A program made the translations under genes and the position numbers. 64,000 nt of DNA, taken from positions 1 through 64,000 of the IMG/VR virus record IMGVR_UViG_3300023174_002543; one strand, written 5' to 3'. The notes under the pieces are model-generated. The model was not told where the DNA came from, did no database searches, and saw nothing but the letters and a program-made list of their open reading frames with translations. Positions within the stretch are counted from its first letter, which is position 1. Each line of letters begins with the position of its first letter. Shown piece after piece: positions 6,104-61,256 of the stretch.

Positions 6104-6108
6104 TAAAG

Positions 6109-6116
6109 TATTTATC
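6109..6116 (-). promoter_or_regulatory. Late promoter (GATAAATA), 5 nt before the desaturase ATG; heads the tailoring-enzyme operon
   Basis: GATAAATA-CTTTA-ATG with no SD. Confidence 0.55.
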
Positions 6117-6144
6117 CTTATAGTACTATCCTCATTTAAATAAA

Positions 6145-6561
6145 TTAACTCACTGCTCCGTGCCTAGTCCCGGTTACTATCCAGTTTACATTACTGTTAC
6201 CTACAATTGCAGCACCGGCCGCACCACCTGCACCACCATAGCCAGTACCATTACCAGTGCTGTTGCCGCCCGCTGCACCAGACGTGCCTAAGAAACCGCC
6301 GGTGCCACCGGTACCTCCTGTATACCCCGCTACACCACCGGTAATACCGGCACCGCCGGCGCCGCCTCCTGTTGCTGTGCCGTTCGCTCCGGTGCCGCCA
6401 GTTGGTCGGGTACTGCCATTTATGGTAACGGTTACGAGACTCGCACCTCCGGTCGCGCCAAGCCCATTGCCGGCACCTCCTCCCCCTCCTCCTCCGCCCC
6501 AATAACACGCACATGCACCGCATGCTATCAATCTACGTTTTTTTATAATATCTGTATTCAT
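6145..6561 (-). CDS. C-terminal half of split gp38-like adhesin no.2, with conserved Cys-rich leader
   Basis: Starts MNTDIIKKRRLIACGACAC, then poly-Gly; ends GAAIVGNSNVNWIVTGTRHGAVS like gp38-type adhesin C-termini. SD AAGGA upstream. Confidence 0.85.
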   Translation of the reverse strand: MNTDIIKKRRLIACGACACYWGGGGGGGGAGNGLGATGGASLVTVTINGSTRPTGGTGANGTATGGGAGGAGITGGVAGYTGGTGGTGGFLGTSGAAGGNSTGNGTGYGGAGGAAGAAIVGNSNVNWIVTGTRHGAVS

Positions 6562-6575: not shown

Positions 6576-7277
6576 TTAGGCGGATGCGCCGCCACCGCCC
6601 CCGCCTCCTCCGCCACCAATAGTACCATTATTAGTTATTGATGTGCTATATCCCACATATAATGCAGGGCCACCGGCGGTGCCGGCACTGCCGGTTATTC
6701 TGGCGGCGCCACCGGCACCAATGCCGCCATCACCACCTTTACCAATTATATAACCATTATTTATGAGTGTTAAACTTGAACCTGCAGGAAATGTAGGAGA
6801 TATATAGACTGCATAAGATCCCGTACTAATTGAGGTAACGTATATGCCGGTTGCAATAGTAAGAGTTGCGTTTACTGCTTGTGTACCATTCCATCCAGCA
6901 TCTACTATAGCTTTTCTTAAGTCAAAATTATTGGTATTTGCTGGAATAGTATAATTATAAGTAAATCCGCAACTGGGGCTGTTTGCTATATCATTTATTG
7001 TAGAACCGTATTTCCCGTCTGCTATTGATTGCCTTAAGGTACTACCGACACAAATGCTACTTAAAACTGTTCCGGATGCTGTGGGGCCGGCTTTGTTACG
7101 CATATCACTCATTGAAATGGTAGATTTATCAGTGGGTTTTCCAGCCAATATTCTAACCAATGAATCATTAAATGTTAGTACAGCCGTGGCGCTTGGGTAA
7201 TTAGTAGATAATCCCTCGTTTAAGGTAGTCTCTACATTCTTAACACTTATAGCATTGGGTGCGGCTGGGGTAGGCAT
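6576..7277 (-). CDS. N-terminal half of Gly-rich gp38-like tail-fibre adhesin no.2
   Basis: LTLINNGYIIGKGGDGG...NNGTIGGGGGGGGG. Shares DNA blocks with 169..882 (e.g. 232..264 = 6636..6668). Confidence 0.75.
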   Translation of the reverse strand: MPTPAAPNAISVKNVETTLNEGLSTNYPSATAVLTFNDSLVRILAGKPTDKSTISMSDMRNKAGPTASGTVLSSICVGSTLRQSIADGKYGSTINDIANSPSCGFTYNYTIPANTNNFDLRKAIVDAGWNGTQAVNATLTIATGIYVTSISTGSYAVYISPTFPAGSSLTLINNGYIIGKGGDGGIGAGGAARITGSAGTAGGPALYVGYSTSITNNGTIGGGGGGGGGGASA

Positions 7278-33200: not shown

Positions 33201-36200
33201 GAAATACTAGTATCTGCACGTAGATAACTAATTGTATCCCCGTTAGTAAGTACCTTCATTTGAAACGTGGTATTTTTTCTGTAGATAGCCAAATCATTTA
33301 GTTTTATAGGTACTAAATTCTGATTCAATACAAAGTTTTGTTGATACAATGTAAATGGTTGCAGAATTCCAACTTCTTTTTCTACGTGAAAATAATTTGA
33401 ACATGGATTCAAATTAATAACACTTCCTGTTTCCCAACCAGTACGAACCCAATATAGCATTTCTGCTATCATTTGATTCCAGTCAAGTACTGTGTTATTT
33501 TCTACATCATCAAACACTACACCGCGGGACTCTAAGTAGTTACCATAACCTGCTAAGAAATTAGCTAACTCTGTTATAGTTTTAAATTGATGTCCATACG
33601 TTACATACTGTAGTTGGGTTGAAAAATCAGTATCTACATAAACTAGTAAATCAATAACTTTTATTAATTTTTGTTTTGTTTTTGGATTAGGTACACTTGA
33701 AATAAAGTATGTTTGGTTTTGACTATTTCCATATACTCTATAACCATATTCAGTTTTTTGTATAATAACAGAACTATAAATGATACTATCATTTGGTTCA
33801 TTTTGATAATGTAAAATGGTGTAGCTGTCATCAGGTACAACCAATGAAGTATTAGAACTGTTCGGTGATCCTTTTTCTATATAGAAGTTTATTTTGTCTT
33901 TATCGGTATATCCACTAATTCTATACGACAATCTAACATCTACATATGCAAGTAAATCTTCAATAATAGTAGTACCTGCTAAACCATATTGGTATAGATA
34001 ATCAATAATCCAGTTCGTATAACTGTGTTTGACGCTTCTATCATCATGTCCGTATAGTTTAGGTTGTACACCCGTACTTCTAAATCTATCGTAAACTAAG
34101 TATTGACGGAATTCGTAGTTATATTTGTAAACATCTAAATCTAAACCTAATGTAAAGAATTGTGCTGGCTTTGCTAATGCAAATATTCGCATTAAATCAA
34201 ATGGCCATGTTGAACTTTTTAGATAGCTATACTCTGCTGGACCCACATCACCGATTGCCCATTCATTATTGAATGTCATTTTGCTATAGTTACGAACCAC
34301 AGATTCAAACGGGCTTATTAGTTCACCTTTGCTATTGACCGGTAGTACGTCTAATAATTTAGGGCGAGCATATCTATCATCAACATATGGATTACCATTA
34401 TTGTATATGTAGCCGTTACTTAAATCAGTCCACAATAATAAATTATCACTTGTGTATGGGCCTAGACCATAACGGTCGTCCCACCATATTGGTTTAACTG
34501 GTAAGCCTAACATCTCCCAGGGAGTGGCATGAGGTGATGCAGTATCATAGAACCATAAATAGATACCTCTCCAGTTACCTTGTTTGAAAGCTGTGTTATC
34601 TACTTTATTTTTTGCTTTATTATAATTCCATGTATACTCATTTGAAGTATCATAGTACTGTACTGCAATATCTACACGATTCAATCCTATCCAGTTTAAG
34701 AAACTGGTAGTATATAATTGCATAACTTGGTCATACGTATAATCTGTAGTTCTAAATTGGCCCGGGAACACATCTGCATATGTTAATGGGATTTTAGCAT
34801 CAACTTTAATGTTATTATAGATTCTGCATTCAAACTCAAATAATACCTTATCCCTAAAATCAATTAGATTACCATAATCATCAAAACCATCATATAATTT
34901 TGTTAGACTACCATCATGTCCCTTAATAAAATATGTAGGTCTCAAATAAGTTTGGTCTAAGATAATTTCAGGAATAAATTTAGGATATAGTCCTAATTTG
35001 GTAGGAGTGTTAGGAATATAACTACCATATGTTTGACTATATTCTTTAACTGTTACAACATCTCCGTCTTGTAACTGAGTCGAAATTATTAGATATGGTT
35101 GAGATTCGTTAACAAAATAATCAACATCCTTTAATAATTGTGAATATCGCATTATTCCGTTAACCATTTTACTAACATAAATTAATACCGATTCATAATT
35201 TGCAATAGTAAAGTTGTATACTTTTGATAACGGATAAACTGTATTACTAATACCAATTGCAAACGTATAACTGTTTACGACAGTAGGAGTTTTACACGGT
35301 AACATGTCTCCCCAAAAGAATGGGGTTGATTGAGTTTTTGAACTAGATATAATGTCTAATACATCATCTAGCATATTACTAGCACTATCGTAAGGTGTAT
35401 AGTCTTGTGAGTTTACTGTGTTAACTAATAATGATTTAAACTTTACATACTCGGTTGCATTATAACCAAGGCTATTAAAAAAGTTTGTGTCTTGTCTACG
35501 AATAAATGCTGCTGATGTTACAATAGATGCGCTATTTTGAATAATTCTAGTACCGTATGGTACTGGATTACCTAAATCTCTATAATTATTTGCACCAAAA
35601 CTTTCGCCGGCTAAGTTAGGTATATTATTACAAATGCTCTTATAGTGGCCTCTTATGTCACCTGCATTAATTGTAGTGGTTTGATAATTGAATGGATTTT
35701 GTTGTAAGTTACTTGGTACCTCATAGTATCCAATATTACTTACGCTATCGCTATATACTTTAACTGTTACCGAGTCACCAGGAGTTAAAGTTTTTGTAAT
35801 AGTCACATGTGTTTCATCACCTACTATAGCGGTAGTATATTCAGAAATCCTAGCATTGTTTACATAAACTACGCTTGTAGGCCAAGCAGTAGAGAAGCTA
35901 TCTTTAATTGGAACATCTAATACAAATGTATTGTTTGTGTTATTATTATAGAATGTAAAATTGAAGATTTGATATTGAAAACTCGTATCAGCCGCAGTCT
36001 CCCATCCTATTTTTCTAATATAATGTGTTTTATCTACGTATTGATATGCATAGCCGTAGTTTACCGGTTGGTTAATACTTTGACCATTATATACAAAATT
36101 AAATGTTTTGCTATTCAAAGTAGCTTCAAAGTTAATATCGTTTAAATTTCCTACACCACTATATTGAATAGGCAAACCTAATACAGGATCTTTAACTCCT

Positions 36201-38416
36201 GATCCAACACTATACTGGAATAAGGTACATCCATTAAAATCTGTTCCTGGATAATAATTACCATCACTAAAACTTATACCGTTACTATCAAACAAATCAA
36301 ATAATGGTGCTTGATTTACCGTGGTTTTAGTTTGACTAACTATCCAACCATACCCGTCGTACTTGTAATTATAGCCCTTATTAGTTACTCCGTTAACTAT
36401 TACTATTTGGTCATCAAACAAAATGTCGCCGTCACTGGCTTTAGTTAATGTAACAACTCTAGCATTATTAACTGTTGCAATAGTTGTTACAAAAATTTTA
36501 TTTCTTACTTCTATATCAGCATCATTAGCAAATATAATTCTACATCCATCAAACAATGCTGAATCTTCACCGTCCGGTAAATAATCATCAAAGCCTCCGC
36601 CTGTTATAGTAGCTAACGCATCAATGGTTGTAGTATCAATATAATCAACTGGGGCTTTACCAAAGTTACCGTGATATAATAATTTTAAATTTGGATAGAA
36701 TTCAATAATAGGTCTTTTTGCTCTACTAGAACCAGCGGTCAATGCTTTATTAGCAATAGGACTTAGCAGGTTATTATCTACGATTGTTTTTAATACATCT
36801 ACATGGAACCAACGATTACCCCTAGTCCAACCATTTCTGTCAAGGCTACTACGATTGATAGTAATATAATCAGGAGTATAAGGTAAATTAATTACATCAC
36901 TAAATCCAATTTGGTCAAATGCACTTGCAGGATCGTCAAAGGGAGCCCCAAATGCTTGACTATATAATTCTGGAACAATTAACTCACTACTAGGTATAAG
37001 TTGTATACTAGTACCTACGCCCTCTACATAATATGAATCATTTAAATAATTAGTTGGAAAAATATTTCCTGTAAACTTAACTCTTAGTCCGTTTGAGAAT
37101 TTAATGCCATTAGGACTGGTGTATGACTTTTGACCTATTATATCAAATATATCAATTACTGCATCAACAGCATTATCTATAAGTTTAATCTTACCAAATT
37201 TATTCGGGCTAGCTTCGTCCTGGTAGTATAGAGTACTAAGTGTTGCGGTATTAGGCGGAATCAATAATATTTCACCATAACTATTTTTAACAAAACTTCT
37301 ACCTATATATTCTACACCACTACCAATTACAATATTATTATTATCTGCAATGACACTACTAGGGATTAGTTTAACAACTGGATAAGCGTCATCACCTACT
37401 AATGTGATTTTAAATACAGTACCTGTTACGGGTTCATTTTCATAACCATCATAACCCGGTGTAGGAGAATTAGAATCATCAAATCCATTACTATCAAAAA
37501 ATTCACCAATAGCAACTCTATTGTTAGGATCTTCTCCGTAGAATATTAATGTTTTACCATTAATATCAACTACTCCGTCAATGTTTTTAATTTCACTTAG
37601 TGCTACACCGTTAACTTTATCAAAACTCAATGTAGATACTAAATCTACAGGTATTAAACCAGGAAACTTATAACTATCTTGTGCGTCACTTTCAGGCACA
37701 TTATATACAAATCTTCCTGAACTTAAACCGTTAAATTCAATACCACTAATATCTCTAGTACTAAAATTAGTTTTATTTGGATCTACACCGTCCATGCCAG
37801 GTAATGACTGAATCCAAAATTTACTTGTATCATCAACTATAAATGTATAAGTACCACCGCGAACTAATGTCAACGTTGGATTTTTTGTAGGTAATAATTT
37901 TCCGTTAACTTCAAATTGGTATGTGTTGACATTAGAAATAACTTTAATAGTTGCAACTTCTAATACTGTTTCGGTTGTAATATCAACACTTTCAGGACCT
38001 TCTGGAATCCAATAGTATTGACCAAAATTAATTAGTTTATCTAAATCAACAAAACTATCCCAACTATAAAACTCATTCTTAAACAAACTATTATGATTAG
38101 GTTGCAATCCGCTTTCTAATCTAAGTGCATCAATGATGCCTGGATAAGTGATTGCGTCTTTTACTTTTCCTGTAACAGAATCTGTTATTACAACAGTTGG
38201 ATCTAATTGATAATTGGTTTTATCAAGGGTGGGTTCTTGTACGTACTGATCCGTTGACTTTACTCCATATCCAAACTTACTACCAATGTATCCTTGTACT
38301 TTTCTGAAGTCCGGCGGTTGAACTAATTGATCCAATGTTGCAGCTAAAAACTGGTCATTGGTGTTTGTTTGAAATATTTCTGGTAAGAAATCAATGGTTC
38401 TTATTCTTGTTGCCAT
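21233..38416 (-). CDS. Giant (5727 aa) baseplate wedge/fibre structural protein (gp7-like position)
   Basis: Uninterrupted 17.2-kb ORF after gp6. Contains YINEVKPYHT, FG-GAP-like propeller repeats, SxDGxxW Asp-box repeats and repeated fibre modules. Confidence 0.7.
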   Translation of the reverse strand: MATRIRTIDFLPEIFQTNTNDQFLAATLDQLVQPPDFRKVQGYIGSKFGYGVKSTDQYVQEPTLDKTNYQLDPTVVITDSVTGKVKDAITYPGIIDALRLESGLQPNHNSLFKNEFYSWDSFVDLDKLINFGQYYWIPEGPESVDITTETVLEVATIKVISNVNTYQFEVNGKLLPTKNPTLTLVRGGTYTFIVDDTSKFWIQSLPGMDGVDPNKTNFSTRDISGIEFNGLSSGRFVYNVPESDAQDSYKFPGLIPVDLVSTLSFDKVNGVALSEIKNIDGVVDINGKTLIFYGEDPNNRVAIGEFFDSNGFDDSNSPTPGYDGYENEPVTGTVFKITLVGDDAYPVVKLIPSSVIADNNNIVIGSGVEYIGRSFVKNSYGEILLIPPNTATLSTLYYQDEASPNKFGKIKLIDNAVDAVIDIFDIIGQKSYTSPNGIKFSNGLRVKFTGNIFPTNYLNDSYYVEGVGTSIQLIPSSELIVPELYSQAFGAPFDDPASAFDQIGFSDVINLPYTPDYITINRSSLDRNGWTRGNRWFHVDVLKTIVDNNLLSPIANKALTAGSSRAKRPIIEFYPNLKLLYHGNFGKAPVDYIDTTTIDALATITGGGFDDYLPDGEDSALFDGCRIIFANDADIEVRNKIFVTTIATVNNARVVTLTKASDGDILFDDQIVIVNGVTNKGYNYKYDGYGWIVSQTKTTVNQAPLFDLFDSNGISFSDGNYYPGTDFNGCTLFQYSVGSGVKDPVLGLPIQYSGVGNLNDINFEATLNSKTFNFVYNGQSINQPVNYGYAYQYVDKTHYIRKIGWETAADTSFQYQIFNFTFYNNNTNNTFVLDVPIKDSFSTAWPTSVVYVNNARISEYTTAIVGDETHVTITKTLTPGDSVTVKVYSDSVSNIGYYEVPSNLQQNPFNYQTTTINAGDIRGHYKSICNNIPNLAGESFGANNYRDLGNPVPYGTRIIQNSASIVTSAAFIRRQDTNFFNSLGYNATEYVKFKSLLVNTVNSQDYTPYDSASNMLDDVLDIISSSKTQSTPFFWGDMLPCKTPTVVNSYTFAIGISNTVYPLSKVYNFTIANYESVLIYVSKMVNGIMRYSQLLKDVDYFVNESQPYLIISTQLQDGDVVTVKEYSQTYGSYIPNTPTKLGLYPKFIPEIILDQTYLRPTYFIKGHDGSLTKLYDGFDDYGNLIDFRDKVLFEFECRIYNNIKVDAKIPLTYADVFPGQFRTTDYTYDQVMQLYTTSFLNWIGLNRVDIAVQYYDTSNEYTWNYNKAKNKVDNTAFKQGNWRGIYLWFYDTASPHATPWEMLGLPVKPIWWDDRYGLGPYTSDNLLLWTDLSNGYIYNNGNPYVDDRYARPKLLDVLPVNSKGELISPFESVVRNYSKMTFNNEWAIGDVGPAEYSYLKSSTWPFDLMRIFALAKPAQFFTLGLDLDVYKYNYEFRQYLVYDRFRSTGVQPKLYGHDDRSVKHSYTNWIIDYLYQYGLAGTTIIEDLLAYVDVRLSYRISGYTDKDKINFYIEKGSPNSSNTSLVVPDDSYTILHYQNEPNDSIIYSSVIIQKTEYGYRVYGNSQNQTYFISSVPNPKTKQKLIKVIDLLVYVDTDFSTQLQYVTYGHQFKTITELANFLAGYGNYLESRGVVFDDVENNTVLDWNQMIAEMLYWVRTGWETGSVINLNPCSNYFHVEKEVGILQPFTLYQQNFVLNQNLVPIKLNDLAIYRKNTTFQMKVLTNGDTISYLRADTSISEHIVIFDNQTVFNDILYNLITGLRQQRLYIRGNKTNQWDGTLYAPGFIQNQNNVVNWKENTKYTKGTIVLYKRKYWMANKLVIVPSNVFDYNDWILTSYDKISTGILANPSTRASEAEYYYDTHRSNIQNDGDILGFSLIGYRPRSYLSSADLDDVSQVNIYKNMIAEKGTLDVVNMFQGATIQNNNLAYDVKENWSIKTAEYGGILNHNFIEFTLDEHLLTGNPAIVSITRGNHVDISQQQVPLYTIKNYGRLIANSNILPTVTDSSITKLPSAGYANLDDVRLYSYTVERISDSVINYVYKNDYIWIADKLNDWNIYTPVGLANRLVSLVNNLNDTCILVFLLPHGLVTNDVIAIVNSDPITNTIVNGFYIVQQVVSNTAVSINLSLQSNVTTITFTKQSLLYKFQSLRISSPTKINTLPLINFEYDSAKVWIDQASINNWAVYQKTNNYKDIGFDIFDINNGSLGAAVAYMPPLGYYISDPGKGKVYKYIRSGQGDLKTDTITHGVGYGTAMARNSEFMIISEPSDTVSKLHIYRIVALPEVEALVAEQVLTVSGTYVGTSMAFSGDSNYLFVGAPKINSVFYFQKQVDYTLLPAAVTNSSLLAISSVTANTPTAGTMTFRFAGTSFALTSKVNVGTTVTLSGFTPAVTSTGVKINKNHVVTGITTKPGFANQVISIEVTIAGTWTKGENGTYGTMTYDPQPEVGQLIATTNPLDKFFVVKGNAVNAIPAGKRITFLQYRQLETSTGLSVLQGFGYDNNSINIQISVTNGSSITTSTSSTVSTAMIGSAIRISGNNYTISNVTGTTTKTITLNTNYTGQTGSGEASVTWSTNAAKAATIDSANGIFGTDRRKYYVVITGDISESGTHFALDPSVDNKDYVTTKNVNAFYSSGSNTTKVYINEFFAAVMYAQLFIALDQYAQTSFTGLSAKVFTYTNMLPTYLTVLTGEYDATTDTTKIHTVERIGYSISITRIPSLDGNTPNPEKYVYDTYINTVNNQFNFIGSFNMLSYDAFNLGKNPGDLSDPDDPTSNSVIHQSDDNFGATIAVNHDASKIFIGSPTYHVRLSPDVQVPPVPDVGVVWVFDRLIETFQVQYTPQEFEDFAVVLPWNFAPTTIVTLNGVPLSSKQYAIVGGIAIQLAVRVKAGDLVTVSSPNLVLMQVMSSYEDINGVIPSQRFGTSIATNTTGSEVLIGTPYDHTVPGQEGAVYRFTNEGKRYGYMIALIGANIAHINSDVTYLFINGYSVYLDISVDRDAYYIADQINNTQVPNVFAYVTEDGRLVIRLLNVELGSDNNKLNVTAFNGNYFYELGMAPYTKTQIIREPHPQHNSMFGYRVAFNEQNSFVVTAPKSNRYAGTFFDKFSDDIHYNTVFDLNLTTFEDVFYNAGAAYMFDYIKPYNESFANSGQYVYAQPVNDNTLVYGAEPLYGNSVSFNDNIVMIGSPGFREGTIGGRVNVFENTSGNQNWSIHRTSTNVVDVNQIQKVQLYNNITDANLVSLDYIDPLRGKLLGAVRQNLDFIGITDPAGYNTTNSMTNSMLWSIKQVGKTWFNTSTTKFLNYHQNDLAYNAKYWGQIFPGSDVTVYTWIESSVTPVNYTGPGTPYNLTKYATAYGVNNNNGLVQKYFYWVRNTNKLHGDKTLTDSILERYITSPQNSGIAYMSPLRSDTFALYNVRDYINGVNTNMHLGFSTGTSESTIQNQFRLIQSNSPSDFLPGLPNYAFGQINPEGLYNRFLESFAGIDETGASVPNYTLPDYMQTGIGVRPRQSMFIDRFGALKNYLEYANDILSKYPINEFSNLTYLSATGAYFDASIYWSNIYWWATGYDNKTKTKVEVGMYSDLYKLDAVEGLIAGVAKNGQGKREVHLYTNGAWKRIGLQDGTIEFSNKLWDYQINKIGFGDNFFDTDVFDTFPAVETYYIIRALNEQIFTGPLLEHRNKSLILMFEYIQSENDDGNNYLPWLNKTSFADVTYTVRELQQEVNYHVDNTTLLGDYINEVKPYHTVIKDFDLRYTNTDVVYSNTSDFDIPPVYNSKTGKFTSPQMKFINPNNYKNEYNVGDAVWNDSNYINWYNHYGLALNGIPGFELGVLTFYMTPTSNTLTIDNARGMPDTGILYIENEIVGYASVNRETGLVSGLTRGINNSFVSDHYPGLIITTDLPGAVVLDSGRGYIDPPRVTAYIDTTKYPAPTREAVLQPVMSGGKVIAIDILDPGENYSVTPEILFTSSYDVSFTQTNLNFINNTILIPSTILDTGDLIKAKCIDGVGSIKDGYYYVYVIAQLEGQELISITLHKTLSASLIGSNRIKLNPGTVNTTITGNEYVFSITARAIAITTNLNVRGIRNTLRFDRTSYIPKVVPWEPNKFWGSQYFQYGIENINSTSSNVSLYYGKPYPGLTGTVTNPGNSTGTGAIFTVTNVLLGGTYNATMTNSGSNYGVFDKITIPGSTLSGITPTHNCYINVSTVSSFYRDLLQDTTTGTGTNARFNITVNGYSEELTGTLTVTNGSITVTGTNTLFYTEVAAGSIIHINGVQCTVASVPANVSSDPDFNVKLTLTTGYTGASGTYTARVAVSEYVAEIDSVFYPGSGYAQGDTIKITGDRLNGTSPANDLTINVSRVDGNGKILLAAAATGLGLGTAVMKGSIKTFTVSGIALDSNFASLQGAVMPILSVNNDHGVTQDISGNVIVRLDYFPSSLEPGQIQGAKTYFYHNSAPYLYTDTDGTRIEINRPKFNPYDVTLGYFIKIINGGSTYHVNQEVIVPGALLGGTTGLNDVIITVQQISDPVSNLTYGFIGGIAEATVTGISAKVFDIYYVHPISLSEVQVFSDPGMMRPVKYNDFNYKHNIDFVDYTPETAGTEVDYLVEYQTHGLTNISDFAYIPEPFTLGLSYKYDFSSIVTYANRIWRCIDSNNDTFFDPYKWVELSSDDRSINALDRIVAYYTPAINMPAKDLQQLVRGISYPGNVYYGNSFSPEDIIPIDVTLKGQELYPRTLNIKVIINNTILLTGALSLVNGSSDVTGIGTLFNAELSYDASIYIDEVEYVVVDVRNNYSITLASPYIGDNIITSAYKYQYVAIGESDTNSLFLTSVDGISWNSHILSENSLNVTDIIYADEKYLVSTRSTNNPMLISYNGTTWAGQGEATLFDSNIGYDNDNFDSSPQSYPADNVNKVIYGSDNFYYGVGSFVTRSVDGIVWYKQYDFGTKTLNTIYDIAEVNTAAFKGFIAVGSGNQILSGADTAAPTVTKASVIINSLDGRVWTLQTPYLTPSALNLVISNSDVVVVGGSNGKLWYSVNGYNWLSCIIAGSPITYTLNSGVYQNSRFIVVGEHGTILTSTDGINWTQRTDNSLTVDNLSNVMYDGLYYYIVGNNATIIRSSNTINWVNVSLLNPAEPDSVVAGDDFLYGYGPEELVPGLMTESLSIKVVTSPGASWDDTPLLPASAYYQNTSFGMKSITSTTNTVNFGKLLKNPAQVSVFLIDSVTKLGNRIYTGYTVNWITKVVTLTSSLPAGKTLMVEAYEVGNGKQTARGSTTYTPLRVDSNTGYSEVYINKPFAPLIIAPVVYHNGVQLLFQTDYDLSFTEDINLSKLVFHTLYDEDTDYITWTILDTSISDFRDSEVTYSIPETQTFTGSTSKTKLLTNNLGGSNIDNAIVEKNGLRLVPVVDYSIDFATSTMTLVSNPITSDTISVTTFNETDRLFLETMIYTATASQTVFDLEQFVTDVTKDNIYYTDVNKAWVTINGKRVGSSKLSYDNANHLTINASISAGDIVMISVTTDGDTPNRMQFNIDVDRYGQTTVYRTNDGDGTWLTEDFNLGDTVMHLHDVTPIMDTVIQDSTVISEDSLIIAYIECDATQVRRSTVRDVTTSSIVTNYNLQVIRGRSALVFENTSQVSLGDQLSVTLNIGNTIELNGEKIRYTQVDFVLNTIGGLTRGVLGTGPVLYNPRYNEVYGLTKNRTLDSKYNSVIWNSSNYADNFGDPLQISNTKAATFLRYGHY

Positions 38417-50126: not shown

Positions 50127-50155
50127 TTGTATTTCTACAACCGTTATGCTATACT
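50127..50155 (+). promoter_or_regulatory. Sigma70-type promoter for gp55 (TTGTAT-17-TATACT, extended TG)
   Basis: -35 at 50127..50132, 17-nt spacer, TGc followed by TATACT at 50150..50155. Confidence 0.65.
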
Positions 50156-50180
50156 CAATTCATCAAAACTACGGAGAAAT

Positions 50181-51077
50181 ATGAGTTTACCAAGCAAAAA
50201 ACCAGTCAACTATTTAAACAATAAAGACATATTAAAAGAGATTCATTCAAGCAAAAACACATATTGTGTATTCTTAAAACCAGAGGACCATAGATACGAT
50301 TTCATAGTAGACATGCCCACTGAGTCTATGGAAAAAAGTTTAGAGTTCGCATATAAGCCAGAAAATATTCAATTAGCCCGCGAAACTAGGGCCACAAGAT
50401 TGAGTTTAGAGGCAGGGGAAAAGGATTCAGTAGATCCATTAAGTATCCCAATGACAGATTTAGTATTTAGGGTAATGACTTGGGATCATATTCCGGTCGC
50501 ACCAAAACAACCCCGCAAAGTAGATAAAAAGAAAACTGCAAAAGATTTCTTTGAGTTTGACAGTGACCAAGATGAAATCTTCTCAGACTTAGAAGATCCA
50601 GCTACTATAAAAGAAATTGATGATATGGTTCATGTCAAAGTTAATTTCCCACCATTCCAACATTTTCGACTAGACAAGAACAACACATTCAAGTGTATTG
50701 GTAAGAGTCATTGGATTGGTGATTTGAAAAAAGGTGAATTCAGTAAAGACCAAGGTAATATTACTAACAAACTTGCCCGTATGTATATTATGATGTGTGA
50801 AAAGTATGCTATGAAATTCAATTGGCGCGGATATACATACAACGATGAAATGCGTAACAGTGCCATTCTACAGCTTACATATGTTGGGTTACGATTCAAC
50901 GAAGCAAAAAGTGCCAATCCTTTCGCATACTACACAGCTGCAATTACAAATAGTTTCTGTCGTGTATTAAACAGTGAAAAGCGTAACCAGAATATAAGGG
51001 ATGACATTTTAGAAATGAATGGACTAAACCCAAGTTGGAGTCGTCAGGGTACTTCAAGTACGGTTTATGAAGAATAG
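50181..51077 (+). CDS. gp55: Late-transcription sigma factor (T4 gp55-like)
   Basis: VNYLNNKDIL and NWRGYTYNDEM...NPFAYYT motifs. Start refined to ATG 50181 (SD GGAG) because the track's TTG 50127 coincides with the -35 box. Confidence 0.85.
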   Translation: MSLPSKKPVNYLNNKDILKEIHSSKNTYCVFLKPEDHRYDFIVDMPTESMEKSLEFAYKPENIQLARETRATRLSLEAGEKDSVDPLSIPMTDLVFRVMTWDHIPVAPKQPRKVDKKKTAKDFFEFDSDQDEIFSDLEDPATIKEIDDMVHVKVNFPPFQHFRLDKNNTFKCIGKSHWIGDLKKGEFSKDQGNITNKLARMYIMMCEKYAMKFNWRGYTYNDEMRNSAILQLTYVGLRFNEAKSANPFAYYTAAITNSFCRVLNSEKRNQNIRDDILEMNGLNPSWSRQGTSSTVYEE

Positions 51078-51119: not shown

Positions 51120-51125
51120 CACTTG

Positions 51126-52139
51126 ATGAGTAATTTATTTAAAAAAGCCGCAGTCTTTACTGACATTCACTTTGGTCTAAAAAGCAACAGTTTACAGCAC
51201 AATTTAGATTGTGAGGGATTCGTTGATTGGTTTATACAAAAAGCCAAATCAGAGAATTGTGAAACTTGTTTCTTTTTAGGCGACTGGCATCATCACAGAG
51301 CCAGTATCAACTTGCACACACTACAGTTTAGTTTGCAGGCAATAGAAAAATTAAGCAAGAATTTTGATCGGGTATTCTTTATACCCGGTAATCACGACCT
51401 CTACTACAGAGACAAGCGTGATGTACATAGTGCTGAGTGGGCTAAACATATTCCAAACATTACAATCGTCAATGACTTTTATAGTGAAGGTGATGTAGTT
51501 ATTACTCCGTGGCTAGTACAAGACGATTACAAGAAAGTTCAAAAACTAAGTGGCAAATATATGTTTGGTCATTTAGAGTTACCTAGATTCTATATGAATG
51601 CTATGGTAGAAATGCCCGATCACGGTGAGATTAATGAAAATCATATGGGTGGCTTTGAAAAAGTATTTTCAGGTCATTTTCATAAACGACAAGCACGTAA
51701 AAATATTTGGTATATAGGTAACAGTTTCCCGCACAACTACGCTGACGCTGGCGATGATGCACGTGGCATGATGATACTAGAATGGGGTAGCGAACCTGTT
51801 TTTCATGCATGGCCTAGACAACCAGTTTTCCGTGTACATAAACTTAGTGATGTATTAGACAATGAACAAGGTTTGCTATTGATTGATAGTTATGTTAGAA
51901 TACATTTAGACACCGAGATTAGTTATGAAGAGGCTAATTTCTTACGTGAAACATGGATACCCGAATACAAACTACGTGAAATGGCACTTATCCCCATGAA
52001 GGTAGAACAAGCCGAGCAAGCAAACATGGACGGCGTTAAGTTTGAAAGTGTAGACCAAATTGTTATTGACCAAATCAATTCAATTGAAAGTCAAGGCTTT
52101 GACAAGAAGATGTTATTGGAAATTTACAACAATCTATGA
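51126..52139 (+). CDS. gp47: Recombination endonuclease subunit (gp47/Mre11/SbcD)
   Basis: Metallophosphoesterase motifs DIH, GD, GNHD, GH and SGHFH. Confidence 0.9.
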   Translation: MSNLFKKAAVFTDIHFGLKSNSLQHNLDCEGFVDWFIQKAKSENCETCFFLGDWHHHRASINLHTLQFSLQAIEKLSKNFDRVFFIPGNHDLYYRDKRDVHSAEWAKHIPNITIVNDFYSEGDVVITPWLVQDDYKKVQKLSGKYMFGHLELPRFYMNAMVEMPDHGEINENHMGGFEKVFSGHFHKRQARKNIWYIGNSFPHNYADAGDDARGMMILEWGSEPVFHAWPRQPVFRVHKLSDVLDNEQGLLLIDSYVRIHLDTEISYEEANFLRETWIPEYKLREMALIPMKVEQAEQANMDGVKFESVDQIVIDQINSIESQGFDKKMLLEIYNNL

Positions 52140-52357
52140 AGATACCTAGAGAAGTTAGAGAACTAGAATCATTGATAAAAGTAAACAAACATTTGGGTAT
52201 TGCTTTGTCTGAGTTAACTAATACTCATTCCTATCTGGGTAGTTTAAGAGAACAAAAGACCTTGATTTCAGTTAAACTGAAATTAGAAGGTATAATAGAA
52301 CGAACATTGCAGGCTGAAAAATTAGCCAAAGATAGTTTTTTTAGAAAATTAAAATGA
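52136..52357 (+). CDS. Hypothetical protein between gp47 and gp46
   Basis: ATGA overlaps at both ends. Confidence 0.6.
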   Translation: MKIPREVRELESLIKVNKHLGIALSELTNTHSYLGSLREQKTLISVKLKLEGIIERTLQAEKLAKDSFFRKLK

Positions 52358-54423
52358 TATTATTAAAGAACATTACATTAAAAAACTTCCTTTCAATTGG
52401 GCAAGTAACACAAGCAGTTAACTTTGACAAACAAGAACTAACATTAATTTTAGGTGAGAACCTAGACTTAGGTGGCGACGGTGCTAGAAACGGTACTGGT
52501 AAGACCACATTGATTCAGGGCTTGTGCTATGCATTGTTTGGAGTACCAATCAATAACATTCGTAAAGATAACTTAGTTAATAGAACTAACGGTTCTAAGA
52601 TGTTAGTAACTTTAGAGTTTAGTGTAAATGGCATTGAATATAAGATTGACCGTGGTCGTAAACCAAACTTGTTAAAGTTCTATGTGAACGACCAACAAAA
52701 AGGTGCAGACGATGCACAGGGCGAGAACAAAGAAACACAAGTACATATTGAAAAAGTCATCAATATGAGTGTTGACATGTTCCGTCATATTGTAGCATTG
52801 AATACATATTCAGAACCATTCTTAGCACTTAAAAATAATGAACAACGTGCTATCATTGAACAGTTATTGGGTATTACGTTGCTTTCAGAAAAAGCAGATG
52901 TGGTTAAAGAACTGATTCGTAATAGCAAAGATAATATACAAGCTGAAGAATTCCGTGTTAAGGCGGTGGATGAGGCTAACAAGCGTGTTAAAGAACAAAT
53001 TGATAGTCTAAAACGCAGACAAACATTATGGACCAATAAACATACTAGTGACTTGGCATATCTAGTTGCACAATATGATGAACTAAGTAAAATTGATATT
53101 GACAAAGAGTTATTAGCACACAAAGATTTAGTAGTTTGGAATGAAAAGAAAAAGCAACAGGATGCATATAATGCATTATTGGCTAGACAAGTTGCTTGGA
53201 AACAAAAACAAGATAAAGACTTGTATGATTTAGAAGATAGTTTATTTAAACTAAACCACATTGATATTGTAACTGAGATACTTGCACATAGGGCATTAGC
53301 TGAGTACAATACAAAAACGGCTGAGTTAGCTGCACGTGATAAAGAACTAGCAAGGCTACAGAAAGATATTGATAAAGAAAACAAGTTAATTAAAAAACTT
53401 GAAGCGGAAGTTGAAACATTACGAAATCACACCTGTTATGCTTGTGGTCAAGATTTTCACGATGAACAACATACCAAAGTTCTACATGATAAAGAATATA
53501 TGTTGCTTGAGGCAAATAATCACGTAACTACATTGTTGAATCAATATAAAGAGCAAAGTGATAAAGATGTTGTCCCAGGTGATAAGCCCAAGACACATTA
53601 CAAGACAGAAGCAGAAGCAATTCGTCATGGTAGTAATGCTGAGAACATTCGCACAAAGATACTTGAAAAAGAAAAAGAAACAGATCCTTATTCTGACCAA
53701 CTTAAAGAGTTAACAGTAATTACACTGGGTCCCATGCCAATCACAATTTATGATACTGAAACTCAAGCGATTGAACACAGGTCTAAAGTTGAAAACTTAT
53801 TGAACAGCATTGCAAATAAAGACGCAGAAACTGATCCATATTCAGAGCAAATAACTGAGATGGAAAGTCAAGCACTACAAAGTGTTGATTTTGAAGCAAT
53901 AAACAAATTAACACGTGCAATGGAACATCAAAAGTTCTTACTTGACTTATTAACTAGTAAAGATAGTTTTGTTCGCAAGAAGATTATTGACCAAAACTTA
54001 AGTTATCTCAATAGTAGACTAACACACTACTTAGACAAAATCGGTTTACCCCATCAAGTTATCTTTAAGAATGATTTAGAAGTTGAAATTACAGAGTTAG
54101 GACGTGAACTTGACTTTGATAACTTGAGTCGTGGTGAACGCAATCGTTTAATCTTGGGCTTAAGTTTTGCTTTCCGTGATGTTTGGGAATCATTATACAG
54201 TCCTATCAATACATTGTTTATTGACGAATTGATTGACAGCGGGCTAGACACAATGGGTGTTGAAAACTCTATTGCTATTCTTAAGGACATGTCACGTAGG
54301 CGTCAAAAGTCTATTTGGCTTGTTTCTCACCGTGAAGAATTAGCTGGTAGAGTACCCAATGTATTAAAAGTAGTCAAAGAAGGTGGTTTTACAACATATT
54401 CTACTGCGGTAGACATAGAATAA
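52354..54423 (+). CDS. gp46: Recombination ATPase subunit (gp46/Rad50/SbcC)
   Basis: Walker A NGTGKTT, zinc hook CYAC, signature LSRGE, Walker B FIDE and VSH. Confidence 0.92.
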   Translation: MILLKNITLKNFLSIGQVTQAVNFDKQELTLILGENLDLGGDGARNGTGKTTLIQGLCYALFGVPINNIRKDNLVNRTNGSKMLVTLEFSVNGIEYKIDRGRKPNLLKFYVNDQQKGADDAQGENKETQVHIEKVINMSVDMFRHIVALNTYSEPFLALKNNEQRAIIEQLLGITLLSEKADVVKELIRNSKDNIQAEEFRVKAVDEANKRVKEQIDSLKRRQTLWTNKHTSDLAYLVAQYDELSKIDIDKELLAHKDLVVWNEKKKQQDAYNALLARQVAWKQKQDKDLYDLEDSLFKLNHIDIVTEILAHRALAEYNTKTAELAARDKELARLQKDIDKENKLIKKLEAEVETLRNHTCYACGQDFHDEQHTKVLHDKEYMLLEANNHVTTLLNQYKEQSDKDVVPGDKPKTHYKTEAEAIRHGSNAENIRTKILEKEKETDPYSDQLKELTVITLGPMPITIYDTETQAIEHRSKVENLLNSIANKDAETDPYSEQITEMESQALQSVDFEAINKLTRAMEHQKFLLDLLTSKDSFVRKKIIDQNLSYLNSRLTHYLDKIGLPHQVIFKNDLEVEITELGRELDFDNLSRGERNRLILGLSFAFRDVWESLYSPINTLFIDELIDSGLDTMGVENSIAILKDMSRRRQKSIWLVSHREELAGRVPNVLKVVKEGGFTTYSTAVDIE

Positions 54424-54455
54424 TTTGGAATAAGAAATTACAGATAAGTAAGAAT

Positions 54456-55028
54456 ATGCCAAGTCCACAAAAAGCAAAAGGTTCAGGATACGAGAGAGAA
54501 GTAGCTAAGTTTCTTAGCGAATTGTACGGTGAAAGTTTCATCCGCGCTCCTGGATCCGGTGCTTATGTGGGTGGCAAGAATCAAGCAAGAACCGAAATCT
54601 TGCACGAAGGTCAGATACGTTCATTCAAAGGAGACATTGTTCCAGGACAAAGTTTCAGTAAAATGAATGTAGAATGTAAATTCTATGCTGACTTTCCGTG
54701 GCACTTAACCCTTACAGGGGAGTGTAAACAACTTGATTCGTGGCTAGACCAACTACTTGATGTTGAAGACATAGGAGATTTTAATATCCTCTTTATGAAA
54801 TTCAATCGTAAAGGTCAATATGTCGCAGTACAACCCAAACTTACTTGGATAGCAGACAATCATGTTTTCTATGCAAGTAAAGAGTACGGTGATTGGCTCA
54901 TCATGGAAAAGGATAGCTTTTTCAAACATAATGCAGAATTAGTAAAAACATATTCAGGCACATCAACAGACACAACGTCAACCAAAAATACAGAACCCTT
55001 GATTTTAGATAAAAAATTAGCAGTCTGA
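54456..55028 (+). CDS. Holliday junction resolvase (Hjc-like PD-(D/E)XK nuclease)
   Basis: KGSGYERE...RAPGSG...GDI...VECK. Confidence 0.8.
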   Translation: MPSPQKAKGSGYEREVAKFLSELYGESFIRAPGSGAYVGGKNQARTEILHEGQIRSFKGDIVPGQSFSKMNVECKFYADFPWHLTLTGECKQLDSWLDQLLDVEDIGDFNILFMKFNRKGQYVAVQPKLTWIADNHVFYASKEYGDWLIMEKDSFFKHNAELVKTYSGTSTDTTSTKNTEPLILDKKLAV

Positions 55029-55420
55029 GTTGTCAGACCTCCTTGAGATTGTACAGATTGTGCTGTGCCGTCAGATTCTGGAGTATGCATGTATTAGCAT
55101 GTATCTATTATATATGGTAGCGAATATATAATGTTTACAATGTTAGCATGGAACACCGAGAAGGCTCTTCAGATAGGAAACCTTCAATGAGTCTATATTT
55201 TACTCCATCAATTGGAATATAGAACATGCGTTGCTGAGATGTTAAATGATTTTAAGTTTAATAGTCTCACTACAGACCCATAATTAGCTTATAGGGCAAC
55301 CGGTGTCACATAGTAACTAAAGGCGTTGACTATGTGGGGTATAGATGGCAAAGGATGACGGGCATGGCAAGTTTTTCCATTGGTAGTGCTTAGACTGCAC
55401 TACCATGGCTTCTAAGCGGC
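55023..55420 (+). ncRNA. Putative large structured non-coding RNA, family unidentified
   Basis: No credible ORF. Nested long-range helices (55061-73/55356-69, 55153-58/55301-06, 55230-35/55295-300) and at least six hairpins; G-U pairs favour the + strand. Confidence 0.6.
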
Positions 55421-55484
55421 AAATAGTATTAAAGCATATAAGATATGCCTAAAGTAATTAAGAGTAAAGGAAGAGTTGTAAGAC

Positions 55485-55545
55485 TAACCGAATCTAATTA
55501 CGAACGAAGTGAGTAATTAGTGAAGGTTAATGACCGAAGGTCATT
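55485..55545. other. Tandem GAA-loop hairpins between convergent transcription units
   Basis: CTAATTAC/GTAATTAG (55494-501/55513-20) around ACGAAGT, and AATGACC-GAA-GGTCATT (55529-45). Confidence 0.5.
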
Positions 55546-55591
55546 CGTAATGAGTTAGGACTTAATGATAAATGAATAGGTACGGATATGA

Positions 55592-55768
55592 TTAGAAGAA
55601 TGGTAAGCCCGTTTTCTTTGTAGTATCCATATTTTCTGATATAAGTTGTGCAATCATGTTTCGTTCATCAATGCTCATATTCATGATATCGGTATAGCTA
55701 ACACCGCCCCTCATATGCCATGTTAGTTTAAGTGACTGATTTTTTATATTAGCCACTTCTTTTTCCAT
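55592..55768 (-). CDS. Baseplate hub assembly protein (gp51-like); probably also the -1 frameshift extension of gp26
   Basis: Not in the ORF track. MEKEVANIKNQSLKLTWHMRGGVSYTDIMNMSIDERNMIAQLISENMDTTKKTGLPFF; the frame stays open back to the slippery site. Confidence 0.75.
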   Translation of the reverse strand: MEKEVANIKNQSLKLTWHMRGGVSYTDIMNMSIDERNMIAQLISENMDTTKKTGLPFF

Positions 55769-55815
55769 TTGCGATATTAGGCTCTTAATTTCTTCGGAAT
55801 TAGAAAGTAAAAGCC

Positions 55816-56646
55816 TTAACCGAAAAAAGTTGAAACGTTGATTACAAATCCTTGTTCATATTGATGTGAACAATGCATACATGATATTTGTAATGGTTTA
55901 GCTTCAGCCTCAGTTCTAAGTTGAATATTAGATTCTTTTATGATATTGAAAGTATTCTTATCACAGTTTCTTAAAAATTCTTCAATATGTTCTTTTTCAA
56001 GTACAGTTGCACTTGGTGTTTTGATATATTCTATCGTAGATAGTAATAATGTTATTGTCATTTCATTCAATCTTTTTATGACAGATGTAGTTTGCTTACT
56101 TTTTTCTTCCTCATCTGTTATGGCTTGTAGATTAGCCATTAATCGTTGAACTTCAAATTGCAATATATTCGAATCGTTAACTTCACTGTATTTCAATGGT
56201 TTGAATTTTACACCCAATTCTCCTACTGTCAATAATTTACTATAGTCACTAGGTTTGAAACTTGCTAATACCCCAGTAAGGTTTACATCATATTTTGCTT
56301 CTTCTTCACAACTTGGGCAAGTTGTTTCTATTTCCATCTTATCACCGTTACTTGCGGCACGGATTGCAATTAGTATCGGGTCTAAATCTATAACAGGTAT
56401 ACTCCATGGGTCAATGATATTTGGAACACAGCTTCTGATTATATCAGCTACTGCCGTTCCATTAAACAATGCATCCGGGGTTCTGCTGGTAATCTCATCA
56501 ATTGTAGTCATTGGATAAATAGGTACTTCTCCGTTATCGGGTAAGTTTATACTACCTTCTTCATATCCCAATCCTCCGCTAGGTAGCTTTAAGTATACTG
56601 CTGGTCTACGAAAATATTGTTGTAATGGGTTTACTGCTTCACTCAT
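55816..56646 (-). CDS. gp26: Baseplate hub assembly chaperone (gp26-like)
   Basis: YLKLPS, PMTTIDE, DLDPILIAIRAAS, two CxxC motifs and a C-terminal FFG. Confidence 0.75.
   Translation of the reverse strand: MSEAVNPLQQYFRRPAVYLKLPSGGLGYEEGSINLPDNGEVPIYPMTTIDEITSRTPDALFNGTAVADIIRSCVPNIIDPWSIPVIDLDPILIAIRAASNGDKMEIETTCPSCEEEAKYDVNLTGVLASFKPSDYSKLLTVGELGVKFKPLKYSEVNDSNILQFEVQRLMANLQAITDEEEKSKQTTSVIKRLNEMTITLLLSTIEYIKTPSATVLEKEHIEEFLRNCDKNTFNIIKESNIQLRTEAEAKPLQISCMHCSHQYEQGFVINVSTFFG
55822..55828 (-). other. Putative -1 programmed frameshift slippery heptamer T TTT TTC
   Basis: X XXY YYZ pattern in the correct phase just before the gp26-like stop codon; the -1 frame runs into the gp51-like ORF. 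Confidence 0.65.
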
Positions 56647-60908: not shown

Positions 60909-60919
60909 TAAATAATATT

Positions 60920-61147
60920 ATGAAACTATTTGAAATGTTTGACCAAGCTGTCTCAGGATACCAAGACACCGGTACGGACAATAGCAAAATCAAATGGAAA
61001 GAAAGTCGAAAGACCAAATTAACACTACGTCAAATACGTAAACTACGTAAAATGAATGACGTTCGTAATTTCGAACACGTATCAAATCTTAAAAAAGTTC
61101 GCAAACAATATGCACCGGCGCCAGCAGAAGGCGCACCAACTCTGTAA
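60920..61147 (+). CDS. Small prohead-associated protein
   Basis: RKTKLTLRQIRKLRKMND motif; lies between portal and protease. Start refined to ATG 60920, 5 nt after GATAAATA (60907..60914). Confidence 0.6.
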   Translation: MKLFEMFDQAVSGYQDTGTDNSKIKWKESRKTKLTLRQIRKLRKMNDVRNFEHVSNLKKVRKQYAPAPAEGAPTL

Positions 61148-61256
61148 AATATTACAGATTTATATCAAAAACGCAAAAAAATAGCACTTATTGAGTGATT
61201 TATTAGTATAGTCACTAAATAACTCTACAAAGCCATTTACATTCAGGAGACAAACA

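Follow-up and report, generated by a model that had tools for sequence, protein, structure and literature searches.

We identified a strongly conserved structured RNA of about 400 nt with many helices and pseudoknots in the gene-free gap downstream of the resolvase gene of an uncultured jumbo phage, which was found only in a clade of uncultured freshwater jumbo myoviruses distantly related to the Rak2/121Q/Atu_ph07 group and which matches no described RNA family. The element covers positions 55023-55424 on the + strand of the analysed window, i.e. the 64,000-nucleotide stretch corresponding to positions 1 to 64,000 of IMG/VR record IMGVR_UViG_3300023174_002543. It is assigned as an RNA gene by comparative evidence, whereas the evidence for its expression is weak and its function is unknown. 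The initial annotation had proposed a ribozyme-sized, possibly undescribed structured RNA on the + strand co-transcribed with the resolvase. Our data strongly support the structured RNA, while its architecture has to be corrected and co-transcription is only weakly indicated.

Results

The gap at 55029-55591 (563 nt) is the largest ORF-free stretch in the window, the next largest being 348 nt at 60909-61256. The upstream gene (54456-55028, +) encodes an Hjc-like PD-(D/E)XK endonuclease (Pfam PDDEXK_15; PHROG 'RusA-like Holliday junction resolvase') and is the last gene of the gp47(SbcD)-gp46(SbcC)-nuclease block, its TGA stop lying inside the first hairpin of the RNA. Downstream, a convergent conserved ORF of 58 aa of unknown function (55592-55768, -) is followed by the baseplate-hub gene (55816-56646, -). 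All stems listed in the initial annotation are present in the sequence. However, a single-sequence fold is only modestly better than shuffles (z = -2.5 on the + strand and -3.2 on the - strand), so the window sequence alone proves little. The comparative data settle this. The region is conserved at nucleotide level in about 95 of the first 106 related loci, the family was found in over 190 related IMG/VR phage loci, and the element is present in 214 of 226 fetched loci, giving 127 distinct full-length sequences of about 365-420 nt, always between the nuclease gene and the 58-aa ORF and hub gene.

RNAalifold gives 67 pairs, 39 of them compensatory, and a mutual-information analysis recovers all helices plus two pseudoknots, a base triple and a same-base tertiary pair, the latter four having been missed in the initial annotation. 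In a curated model, 84 pairs are 92% paired compared to 78% in shuffles, with 62 of them being compensatory. On a covariance-model alignment of 76 sequences of the central part, 39 pairs are 98.6% paired compared to 78.8% in shuffles, 33 pairs show compensatory changes, 0 of 500 shuffles are as high and slid controls give 30-37% pairing, although the shuffle controls do not fully correct for phylogeny. Covariation supports GTCTGA/TCAGAC, the base of the long hairpin, ACACCG/CGGTGT, GAAGG/CCTTC, TCTATATT/AATATAGA, GTTGCT/GGCAAC, GAGA/TCTC and CACATAGT/ACTATGTG, whereas TGGTAGTGC/GCACTACCA is invariant and its only change (A to G) gives a G-U pair on the + strand. G-U pairs outnumber A-C pairs 544 to 149, placing the RNA on the + strand. 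Of 353 columns, 90 are at least 98% conserved, against 3% of third codon positions in the adjacent gene, indicating purifying selection.

Comparative analysis supports ten helices, arranged as three 5' hairpins, a central four-way domain locked by two pseudoknots and a probable base triple, and a 3' domain, rather than as a simple nest closed by an outer helix. Hairpin H1 (55023-55038; GUCUGA/UCAGAC) is 86% paired compared to 63% in shuffles, with 5 of 6 pairs being compensatory, and always directly abuts the CUCCUYGAG block, even in the most divergent members. A terminator scan flags H1 plus a T-run on the minus strand in the window, but the A/T-run is absent in divergent members while H1 stays fused to CUCCUYGAG, and we therefore rejected H1 as a minus-strand terminator. 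H2 (55039-55083) is a long irregular hairpin with the base helix CUCC (55039-42):GGAG (55080-83), an internal loop carrying invariant tandem G-A/A-G (55045-46 with 55074-75) and an upper stem (55047-56/55063-72) with compensatory changes at 9 of 9 pairs. The CCUCC resembling an anti-Shine-Dalgarno sequence is not exposed as a single strand but paired with GGAG, as position 55042:55080 is C-G in 124 and U-A in 3 sequences and 55044 x 55078 is U/C in 121 and C/U in 6 sequences, excluding an anti-Shine-Dalgarno mimic. H3 (55086-55152) is a hairpin of variable length whose base (55088-92/55146-50) covaries, and which carries a lineage-specific AT-rich extension of about 45 nt occurring only in the window and a few relatives.

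The 13-bp outer helix of the initial annotation (55061-73/55356-69) is not supported. It is 83% compatible across the family, equalling the shuffle expectation (0.828), residues 55063-72 lie in the covarying local hairpin, and family members lacking the 5' strand keep the 3' strand. Likewise, the long-range helices GGAGU/GCUUC and GCYG/CGGC suggested by RNAalifold are invariant or no better than shuffles, and the 3 sequences with A at 55080 give C-A mismatches.

In the central domain (55153-55306), H4 (ACACCG/CGGUGU) closes a junction with three arms, i.e. H5 (55160-64/55181-85 plus 55168-70/55177-79), H6 (55187-89/55225-27 plus 55192-99/55216-23) and H7 (55230-35/55295-300), with H7 carrying H8 (55236-39/55265-68 plus 55242-44/55259-61) and the linker ACUACAG (55269-75) being invariant. 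It is followed by hairpin H9 (55307-55336; CACAUAGU/ACUAUGUG), for which 9 of 9 model pairs are compensatory. The segment after H9 (55337-55348) docks back into the central domain and holds the 3' strands of both pseudoknots, separated by AUA. In PK1, CCAUC in the H6 loop (55205-55209) pairs with GAUGG (55344-48), with all 5 pairs being compensatory and 99% paired compared to 83% in shuffles. In PK2, ACCC in the linker between H8 and H7 (55276-55279) pairs with GGGU (55337-40), position 55276:55340 being U-A/A-U/C-G/G-C with 97% paired. Support for PK2 is weaker than for PK1, as a register slid by one is also 93% compatible. Position 55288 is the third base of a probable major-groove base triple with the H4 pair 55154:55305 (triplets U.U-A in 64, C.C-G in 24 and A.A-U in 11 sequences), the triple geometry being inferred. 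The 3' domain (55349-55424) holds long conserved single strands (GGAUGACGGKCAUGGCAA and AUGGCUUCNAAKCGGCAA) around the invariant hairpin H10 (55381-89/55397-405). Much of this domain is invariant, so its pairing cannot be tested by covariation, but positions 55362 and 55416 covary as identical bases (G/G 81, U/U 32, C/C 2, A/A 2), suggesting a same-base tertiary pair of inferred geometry.

An AT-rich spacer (55425-55484), conserved neither in sequence nor in length, separates the element from two conserved hairpins with C(GAA)G triloops (55485-55545), the first of which also has tandem G-A pairs. Their stems covary among relatives, 111 of 123 relatives have one or both, and the loop is GAA in 150 of 177 hairpins. 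This is probably the 3' end or terminator module of the rightward transcript, although the terminator role is inferred and the U-tract is weak. The hairpin type is not a general terminator style in this window.

Searches against Rfam 15 in gathering mode gave 0 matches in the whole window, only noise at E of 4 or more was obtained for 54900-55900 in permissive mode (E up to 10), and 0 matches at E up to 5 were found in four other family members and their flanks. A blastn search of 54400-55900 against 50,697 cultured-phage records gave no match. The hub protein places the phage near Rak2/121Q/Atu_ph07-type jumbo phages at about 30% identity, and Atu_ph07 has the same synteny without the RNA. 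Scanning bacterial and archaeal genomes with the H10 motif gave two hits (Chitinophaga, Massilia), both being chance matches inside GC-rich coding sequence. A covariance model of the central domain found no homologue in distant loci (L095-L105 and Atu_ph07) nor, with filters off, in the gap of locus L096. No description was found in the literature, although the IMG/VR catalogue of more than 10,000 candidate phage RNAs (PMC10690425) could contain it.

A protein-coding gene, also in an alternative code or degraded, is effectively refuted, as is a chance or assembly artefact. Nothing beyond short ORFs of 30-73 codons in the window copy speaks for it. There is no conserved frame, all six frames hold 6-9 stops of all three kinds, and recoding any one stop leaves stops in most family members. 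Furthermore, the substitution pattern is compensatory by helix and not by codon, and the element occurs in over 100 independent assemblies.

Co-transcription with the resolvase is only weakly indicated. The strands agree, no conserved promoter lies in between, and one metatranscriptome contig of a relative runs from the resolvase 3' end into the RNA. The late-promoter-like motif of this phage is ATAAATA upstream of late genes, and the ATAAAAAT preceding H1 does not fit it and is not conserved in divergent members. No direct evidence shows a discrete transcript, its ends or its abundance. Metatranscriptome contigs of relatives cover the 5' half of the element, but at low depth (2.7-5.4), similar to a resolvase fragment, DNA carry-over cannot be excluded, and word shares are ambiguous. 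The RNA is not tied to the resolvase family, as in locus L161 a GIY-YIG-like gene replaces the PDDEXK gene and the RNA is retained.

Discussion

The model we favour, although it is about as likely to be wrong as right, is that the element is a 3'-UTR-embedded RNA made by read-through from the gp47-gp46-nuclease operon and ending at the paired C(GAA)G hairpins. Its compact, pseudoknot-locked fold would make it a stable, discrete molecule acting in trans through that fold and its invariant unpaired nucleotides, as a scaffold or decoy for a phage or host protein or for a small ligand, with catalysis as the less likely variant, and not by simple antisense pairing or as a cis regulator. The trans-acting mode is inferred from the architecture alone, as no partner protein, ligand or reaction is identified. 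Against a regulatory leader, no + strand gene follows the RNA and the next genes are convergent.

An alternative, which we regard as possible but less likely, is a cis-acting 3'-UTR or transcript-boundary element protecting the gp47-gp46-nuclease mRNA from 3' exonucleases or insulating this operon from the convergent late operon. The position at the 3' end of the rightward operon facing convergent late genes, the lack of a detectable own promoter, the contig bridging the resolvase 3' end and the RNA and the conserved hairpins following it are in agreement with this. However, about 400 nt with two pseudoknots, a triple and 90 near-invariant columns are far more than exonuclease blocking or termination needs, Atu_ph07 has the same gene arrangement without such an element, and conservation is independent of which nuclease gene lies upstream.

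A ribozyme, either self-processing and releasing itself from the operon transcript or catalysing another reaction, is unlikely on present evidence. The size, the double-pseudoknot core with the base triple and the invariant unpaired nucleotides at junctions are typical of large ribozymes, and the order PK2 5' strand, H7/H4 3' strands, H9, PK2 3' strand may loosely recall the P7-P3-P8-P7 order of group I cores. In contrast, no ribozyme family of Rfam matches even at E up to 10, the element is intergenic without exon context, and no cleavage-site signature or heterogeneous ends were seen in the metatranscriptome contigs, the depth of which is too low to judge. Group I intron and RNase P RNA cores share the size class and a pseudoknotted core, and apparent short look-alikes of RNase P CR-I and CR-V flank H4 (GGAAUACCGAG and ACAGAGCAACCGGU). 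However, the helix topology differs, H4 being a nested junction helix unlike the P4 pseudoknot, there is no P1/P10 context, no tRNA genes are present in the window, and the ACAG lies inside or next to H7 rather than in a joining strand.

A ligand-sensing or ligand-sequestering RNA, riboswitch-like or a sponge for a host signalling nucleotide and possibly switching between alternative pairings, is still more doubtful. Mutually exclusive, highly conserved pairings exist, as GGUAGUG can pair with either of two CACUAC copies (55268-73 in the linker region or 55398-403 in the 3' strand of H10) and the 55061-70 segment can pair locally or with 55359-69, but these alternatives have no covariation support, the RNA is much larger than known aptamers and no riboswitch family matches. 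A DNA-level element such as a replication origin, primer-RNA region, packaging or recombination site is very unlikely. The element sits next to the recombination genes and the hub gene, near where T4 probably has ori(uvsY) beside genes 25/26/51, and hairpins could also form in single-stranded DNA, but the strand asymmetry of wobble pairs, the pseudoknots and the U.A-U / C.G-C type triple point to a folded single strand of fixed polarity, and the conserved core contains no iterons or AT-rich unwinding repeats.

Large RNAs with complex tertiary structure are rare, and those whose function was worked out (ribosome, RNase P, introns, riboswitches, tmRNA) each changed the field, while orphans such as OLE, GOLLD, ROOL and raiA are under active study. 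The element resembles the large orphan RNAs GOLLD, ROOL, OLE and HEARO-type RNAs in its several hundred nucleotides, many covarying helices, pseudoknots, blocks of invariant nucleotides and unknown biochemical function, being likewise found by comparative genomics. However, it has no sequence or structure match to any of their Rfam models, it is smaller than GOLLD, ROOL and OLE, and it is restricted to one clade of freshwater jumbo myoviruses and fixed at one syntenic position at the end of the recombination-nuclease operon. It is a well-supported family from viruses in which almost nothing non-coding has been described, and the alignment is already deep enough to guide structural and mutational work. 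GOLLD and ROOL are often phage- or prophage-borne and form RNA-only multimers (10.1101/2024.12.08.627333). For our element, the only hint of multimerisation is an invariant palindrome CCAUGG at 55403-08. Tentatively, it could represent a new class of large functional RNA specific to jumbo phages, either a ribozyme or an RNA machine or decoy, for example sequestering a host defence protein or signalling nucleotide or assembling into an RNA-only multimer, in which the double-pseudoknot and triplex core and the invariant 3' domain would form the active or binding site. The phi29 pRNA, a phage-encoded structural RNA acting as a protein-bound part of the packaging motor, offers a functional analogy as a lead only. 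The portal gene lies 3.7 kb away, but there is no similarity, and this phage group has, as it appears, T4-type packaging genes for which no RNA component is known.

Interestingly, the Polynucleobacter-1 RNA motif (RF01718), an orphan structured RNA known from freshwater sequences, was found (66 bits against a gathering score of 37) in the distant relative L104 in the analogous position, i.e. an ORF-free gap of about 480 nt just downstream of a small nuclease-like (GIY-YIG-like) gene, about 2 kb beyond the hub gene. This motif of about 140 nt (141-position model) has a different architecture, gives no hit in the window at E up to 10 or in the other family members searched at E up to 5, and our model of the central domain does not hit L104. 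This is a positional analogy only and not demonstrated homology. It hints that this genomic position may be a recurrent home for phage RNAs.

Genomic context of the structured RNA element

The window is part of the IMG/VR contig IMGVR_UViG_3300023174_002543 (367 kb), a jumbo myovirus with T4-type core genes. The rightward genes encode a gp47/SbcD-like protein (51123-52139), a gp46/SbcC-like protein (52354-54423) and a 190-aa Hjc-like PD-(D/E)XK nuclease (54456-55028; Pfam PDDEXK_15, PHROG 'RusA-like resolvase'), on which a conserved 58-aa ORF (55592-55768) and a baseplate-hub gene (55816-56646, Pfam T4_baseplate) converge from the right. The hub protein is about 30% identical to those of Agrobacterium phage Atu_ph07, Sinorhizobium phage Phosso and the E. 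coli 121Q/PBECO4 group. The 58-aa ORF on the minus strand has no Pfam or PHROG hit but is conserved with 43-79% identity next to the hub gene in essentially all related loci, including distant ones; it is a real small gene of unknown function, likely tied to the baseplate module. The 563-nt stretch 55029-55591 between the nuclease gene and this ORF is the largest ORF-free gap in the window. Apart from this region, a single 5,727-aa ORF, followed by ORFs of 1,123, 1,073 and 875 aa, is located on the minus strand (21233-38416) in what looks from the neighbouring genes like the structural module.

The non-coding stretch is conserved across related phage loci

All stems proposed in the initial annotation are present in the sequence. 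Folding of the window copy alone is only modestly better than that of shuffled sequences on either strand (z = -2.5 and -3.2), so that the decisive evidence is comparative. We searched IMG/VR with the nuclease and hub proteins, resulting in 106 loci, and blastn found the non-coding stretch to be conserved in about 95 of these at 65-97% identity. A profile built from the alignment finds the element in 214 of 226 loci, giving 127 distinct full-length sequences. Wherever flanks are present, the order is always nuclease gene, RNA, 58-aa ORF (minus strand) and hub gene (minus strand).

Comparative analysis supports ten helices

Three methods, i.e. RNAalifold (67 pairs, 39 compensatory), a mutual-information analysis with APC correction and direct pair counts, agree on ten helices on the + strand. 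H1 is formed by 55023-28/55033-38. H2 is a long irregular hairpin with a base of CUCC (55039-42) and GGAG (55080-83), an internal loop with invariant tandem G-A/A-G (55045-46 with 55074-75) and an upper stem of 55047-56/55063-72, while H3 is variable in length and has its base at 55088-92/55146-50. H4 (55153-58/55301-06) closes a junction carrying H5 (55160-64/55181-85 plus 55168-70/55177-79), H6 (55187-89/55225-27 plus 55192-99/55216-23) and H7 (55230-35/55295-300), the latter carrying H8 (55236-39/55265-68 plus 55242-44/55259-61). These are followed by H9 (55307-14/55329-36) and by H10 (55381-89/55397-405), which is invariant. We aligned a covariance model of the central part (R1) to 76 sequences that are less than 93% identical to one another. 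On this alignment, 39 pairs are 98.6% paired compared to 78.8% in shuffles, 33 pairs have changes on both sides and the covariation score is 0.595 against 0.195. None of 500 shuffles reaches these values, and partners slid by 1-3 columns give only 30-37% pairing.

The comparative data led us to correct the initial annotation in several respects. The proposed 13-bp outer helix (55061-73/55356-69) is compatible in 83% of cells, which is exactly what is obtained with shuffled columns (0.828). Its 5' strand belongs to H2, in which all 9 upper-stem pairs have compensatory changes, and thirteen alignment members replace this 5' segment with a short GCN/NGC hairpin yet keep the 3' strand. The outer helix may be an alternative conformer, but it has no support. 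The invariant CCUCCUUGA resembles the 3' end of 16S rRNA, but it is not free: position 55042:55080 changes from C-G to U-A in three sequences and 55044/55078 swaps from U/C to C/U in six, which places CUCC opposite GGAG. The 45-nt AT-rich top of H3 is specific to the window and a few relatives.

Pseudoknots and further tertiary contacts

We identified additional contacts that could not be seen in the initial annotation. In the pseudoknot PK1 the H6 loop CCAUC (55205-09) pairs with GAUGG (55344-48), with all five pairs being compensatory (for example U-A 49.7 / C-G 32.5 weighted counts) and 99% being paired. In the pseudoknot PK2 ACCC (55276-79) pairs with GGGU (55337-40), and position 55276:55340 shows U-A, A-U, C-G and G-C. 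Position 55288 tracks the H4 pair 55154:55305 as U with U-A (64 sequences), C with C-G (24) and A with A-U (11), which is the pattern of a major-groove triple, although the geometry is inferred. Positions 55362 and 55416 covary as identical bases (G/G 81, U/U 32, C/C 2, A/A 2), which fits either a symmetric non-Watson-Crick tertiary pair or a shared recognition partner. Moreover, the invariant hexamer CACUAC occurs twice, once as an unpaired linker (55268-55273) and once as the 3' strand of H10 (55398-55403). The H10 5' strand could therefore pair with either copy, giving a possible conformational switch or a duplicated recognition site, all three segments being invariant and thus without information from covariation.

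Strand, selection and coding potential

In the supported helices, G-U pairs outnumber A-C pairs 544 to 149, and the only change in H10 is A to G, resulting in a G-U pair. The folded molecule is therefore the + strand; an explanation as a DNA-level element appears very unlikely to us. Ninety of 353 columns are at least 98% conserved, compared to 3% of third, 37% of first and 51% of second codon positions in the adjacent nuclease gene across the same 116 genomes. No frame is conserved, every frame of the window copy has 6-9 stops of all three kinds, and recoding any single stop codon does not open a frame across the family. A coding gene or an artefact is the least likely of the explanations considered, and we regard it as almost certain that the element is a genuine functional structured RNA on the + strand.

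Boundaries and transcription

Conservation starts at H1, which stays fused to CUCCUYGAG even in the most divergent members, whose upstream sequence differs. In the window and in about five close relatives, the nuclease ORF reads through the usual TAA and stops at a TGA inside H1 (55026-55028), adding about 7 residues, whereas in most relatives the stop lies 13-45 nt upstream of H1. Conservation ends at GCGGCAAU (about 55424), followed by a variable AT-rich spacer and by two conserved, adjacent hairpins with C(GAA)G triloops (55485-55545), the stems of which covary across the family. The first of these also has tandem G-A pairs and GAA-rich flanks (ACCGAA ... UGAAGGU). One or both of these hairpins are present in 111 of 123 relatives, and they are not a general hairpin type in the 64-kb window, the only other one of this type being a 6-bp hairpin at about 16139 on the minus strand. 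We take them to be the 3'-end module of the rightward transcript, which is an inference, and the U-tract is weak; they could be a protein-binding module rather than a plain terminator.

No conserved promoter precedes H1. A recurrent (G/C)ATAAATA motif lies 15-40 nt upstream of many presumed late genes of this phage (upstream of the genes ending or starting at 6103, 9214, 20410, 41800, 50064 and 56646), which fits a T4-type late promoter recognised by a gp55-like sigma factor, and the ORF at 50127-51077 sits where Atu_ph07 has its late sigma factor. The A-rich run before H1 neither fits this late-promoter-like motif, ATAAATA, nor is it conserved. With the nuclease stop codon lying inside H1 in the window, read-through from the nuclease operon is the simplest source of the RNA. 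Logan contigs from four lake metatranscriptomes, all from relatives, cover 55012-55237 at depth 2.7-5.4, and one extends 55 nt into the nuclease gene. This fits co-transcription, although DNA carry-over is not excluded. A role as a cis-acting 3'-UTR or boundary element remains possible, but we consider it less likely than the model described below.

Relation to known RNAs and a model for its function

We found no Rfam 15 family match at gathering score in the window, at E up to 10 in the region or at E up to 5 in other members, and ARAGORN finds no tRNA or tmRNA. There is no match in cultured phages, a motif scan of 185,579 species genomes gave only two chance hits, and model R1 finds nothing in more distant relatives or in Atu_ph07. 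Full-text searches found no description, although the element could sit unnamed among the more than 10,000 candidates of PMC10690425. By its size, covarying helices and pseudoknots, the element belongs to the large orphan structured RNAs, often phage-borne, such as GOLLD, ROOL and OLE, but it is not a member of any family for which we found a description.

The element is an RNA under strong purifying selection with a compact fold locked by pseudoknots, at a fixed genomic position and independent of which small nuclease gene precedes it. In one family member (locus L161), the gene upstream of the RNA is a 147-aa GIY-YIG-like protein (6718-7161), preceded by a radical-SAM-like ORF, instead of the PDDEXK nuclease. 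We suggest a model according to which the RNA is released from, or stably survives at, the 3' end of the early/middle recombination-nuclease transcript and then acts in trans through its tertiary structure and its invariant unpaired nucleotides (ACUACAG, GGAUGACGGKCAUGGCAA, AUGGCUUCNAAKCGGCAA) by binding a protein or small molecule, or less likely by catalysis. This mechanism is inferred, and we regard it as about as likely as not. A ribozyme is unlikely, and a ligand sensor or sponge is more doubtful still.

Distant relatives hint that this genomic position may hold other RNAs. The GIY-YIG-like family found in L161 also sits upstream of the ORF-free gap in two distant relatives (loci L101 and L104), suggesting interchangeable small nucleases. 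L101 (5532-6043) and a further distant relative, L096 (5041-5555), have ORF-free gaps of about 500 nt at the same syntenic position, which show no detectable homology to this RNA by nhmmer, by model R1 or by Rfam. L096 shares only short strings (CUGUGGAGUAAG, CAACUAGUCU) and the same downstream hairpin, and these gaps may contain further unrelated or very divergent RNAs. In L104, the hub protein of which is 33% identical, we discovered the Rfam orphan Polynucleobacter-1 RNA (6011-6149, minus strand of the locus; 66 bits, gathering score 37) within an ORF-free gap of about 480 nt directly downstream of the GIY-YIG-like gene and about 2 kb beyond the hub gene, suggesting that this 'bacterial/lake' motif is phage-borne and that the position after the small nuclease gene can hold an RNA.
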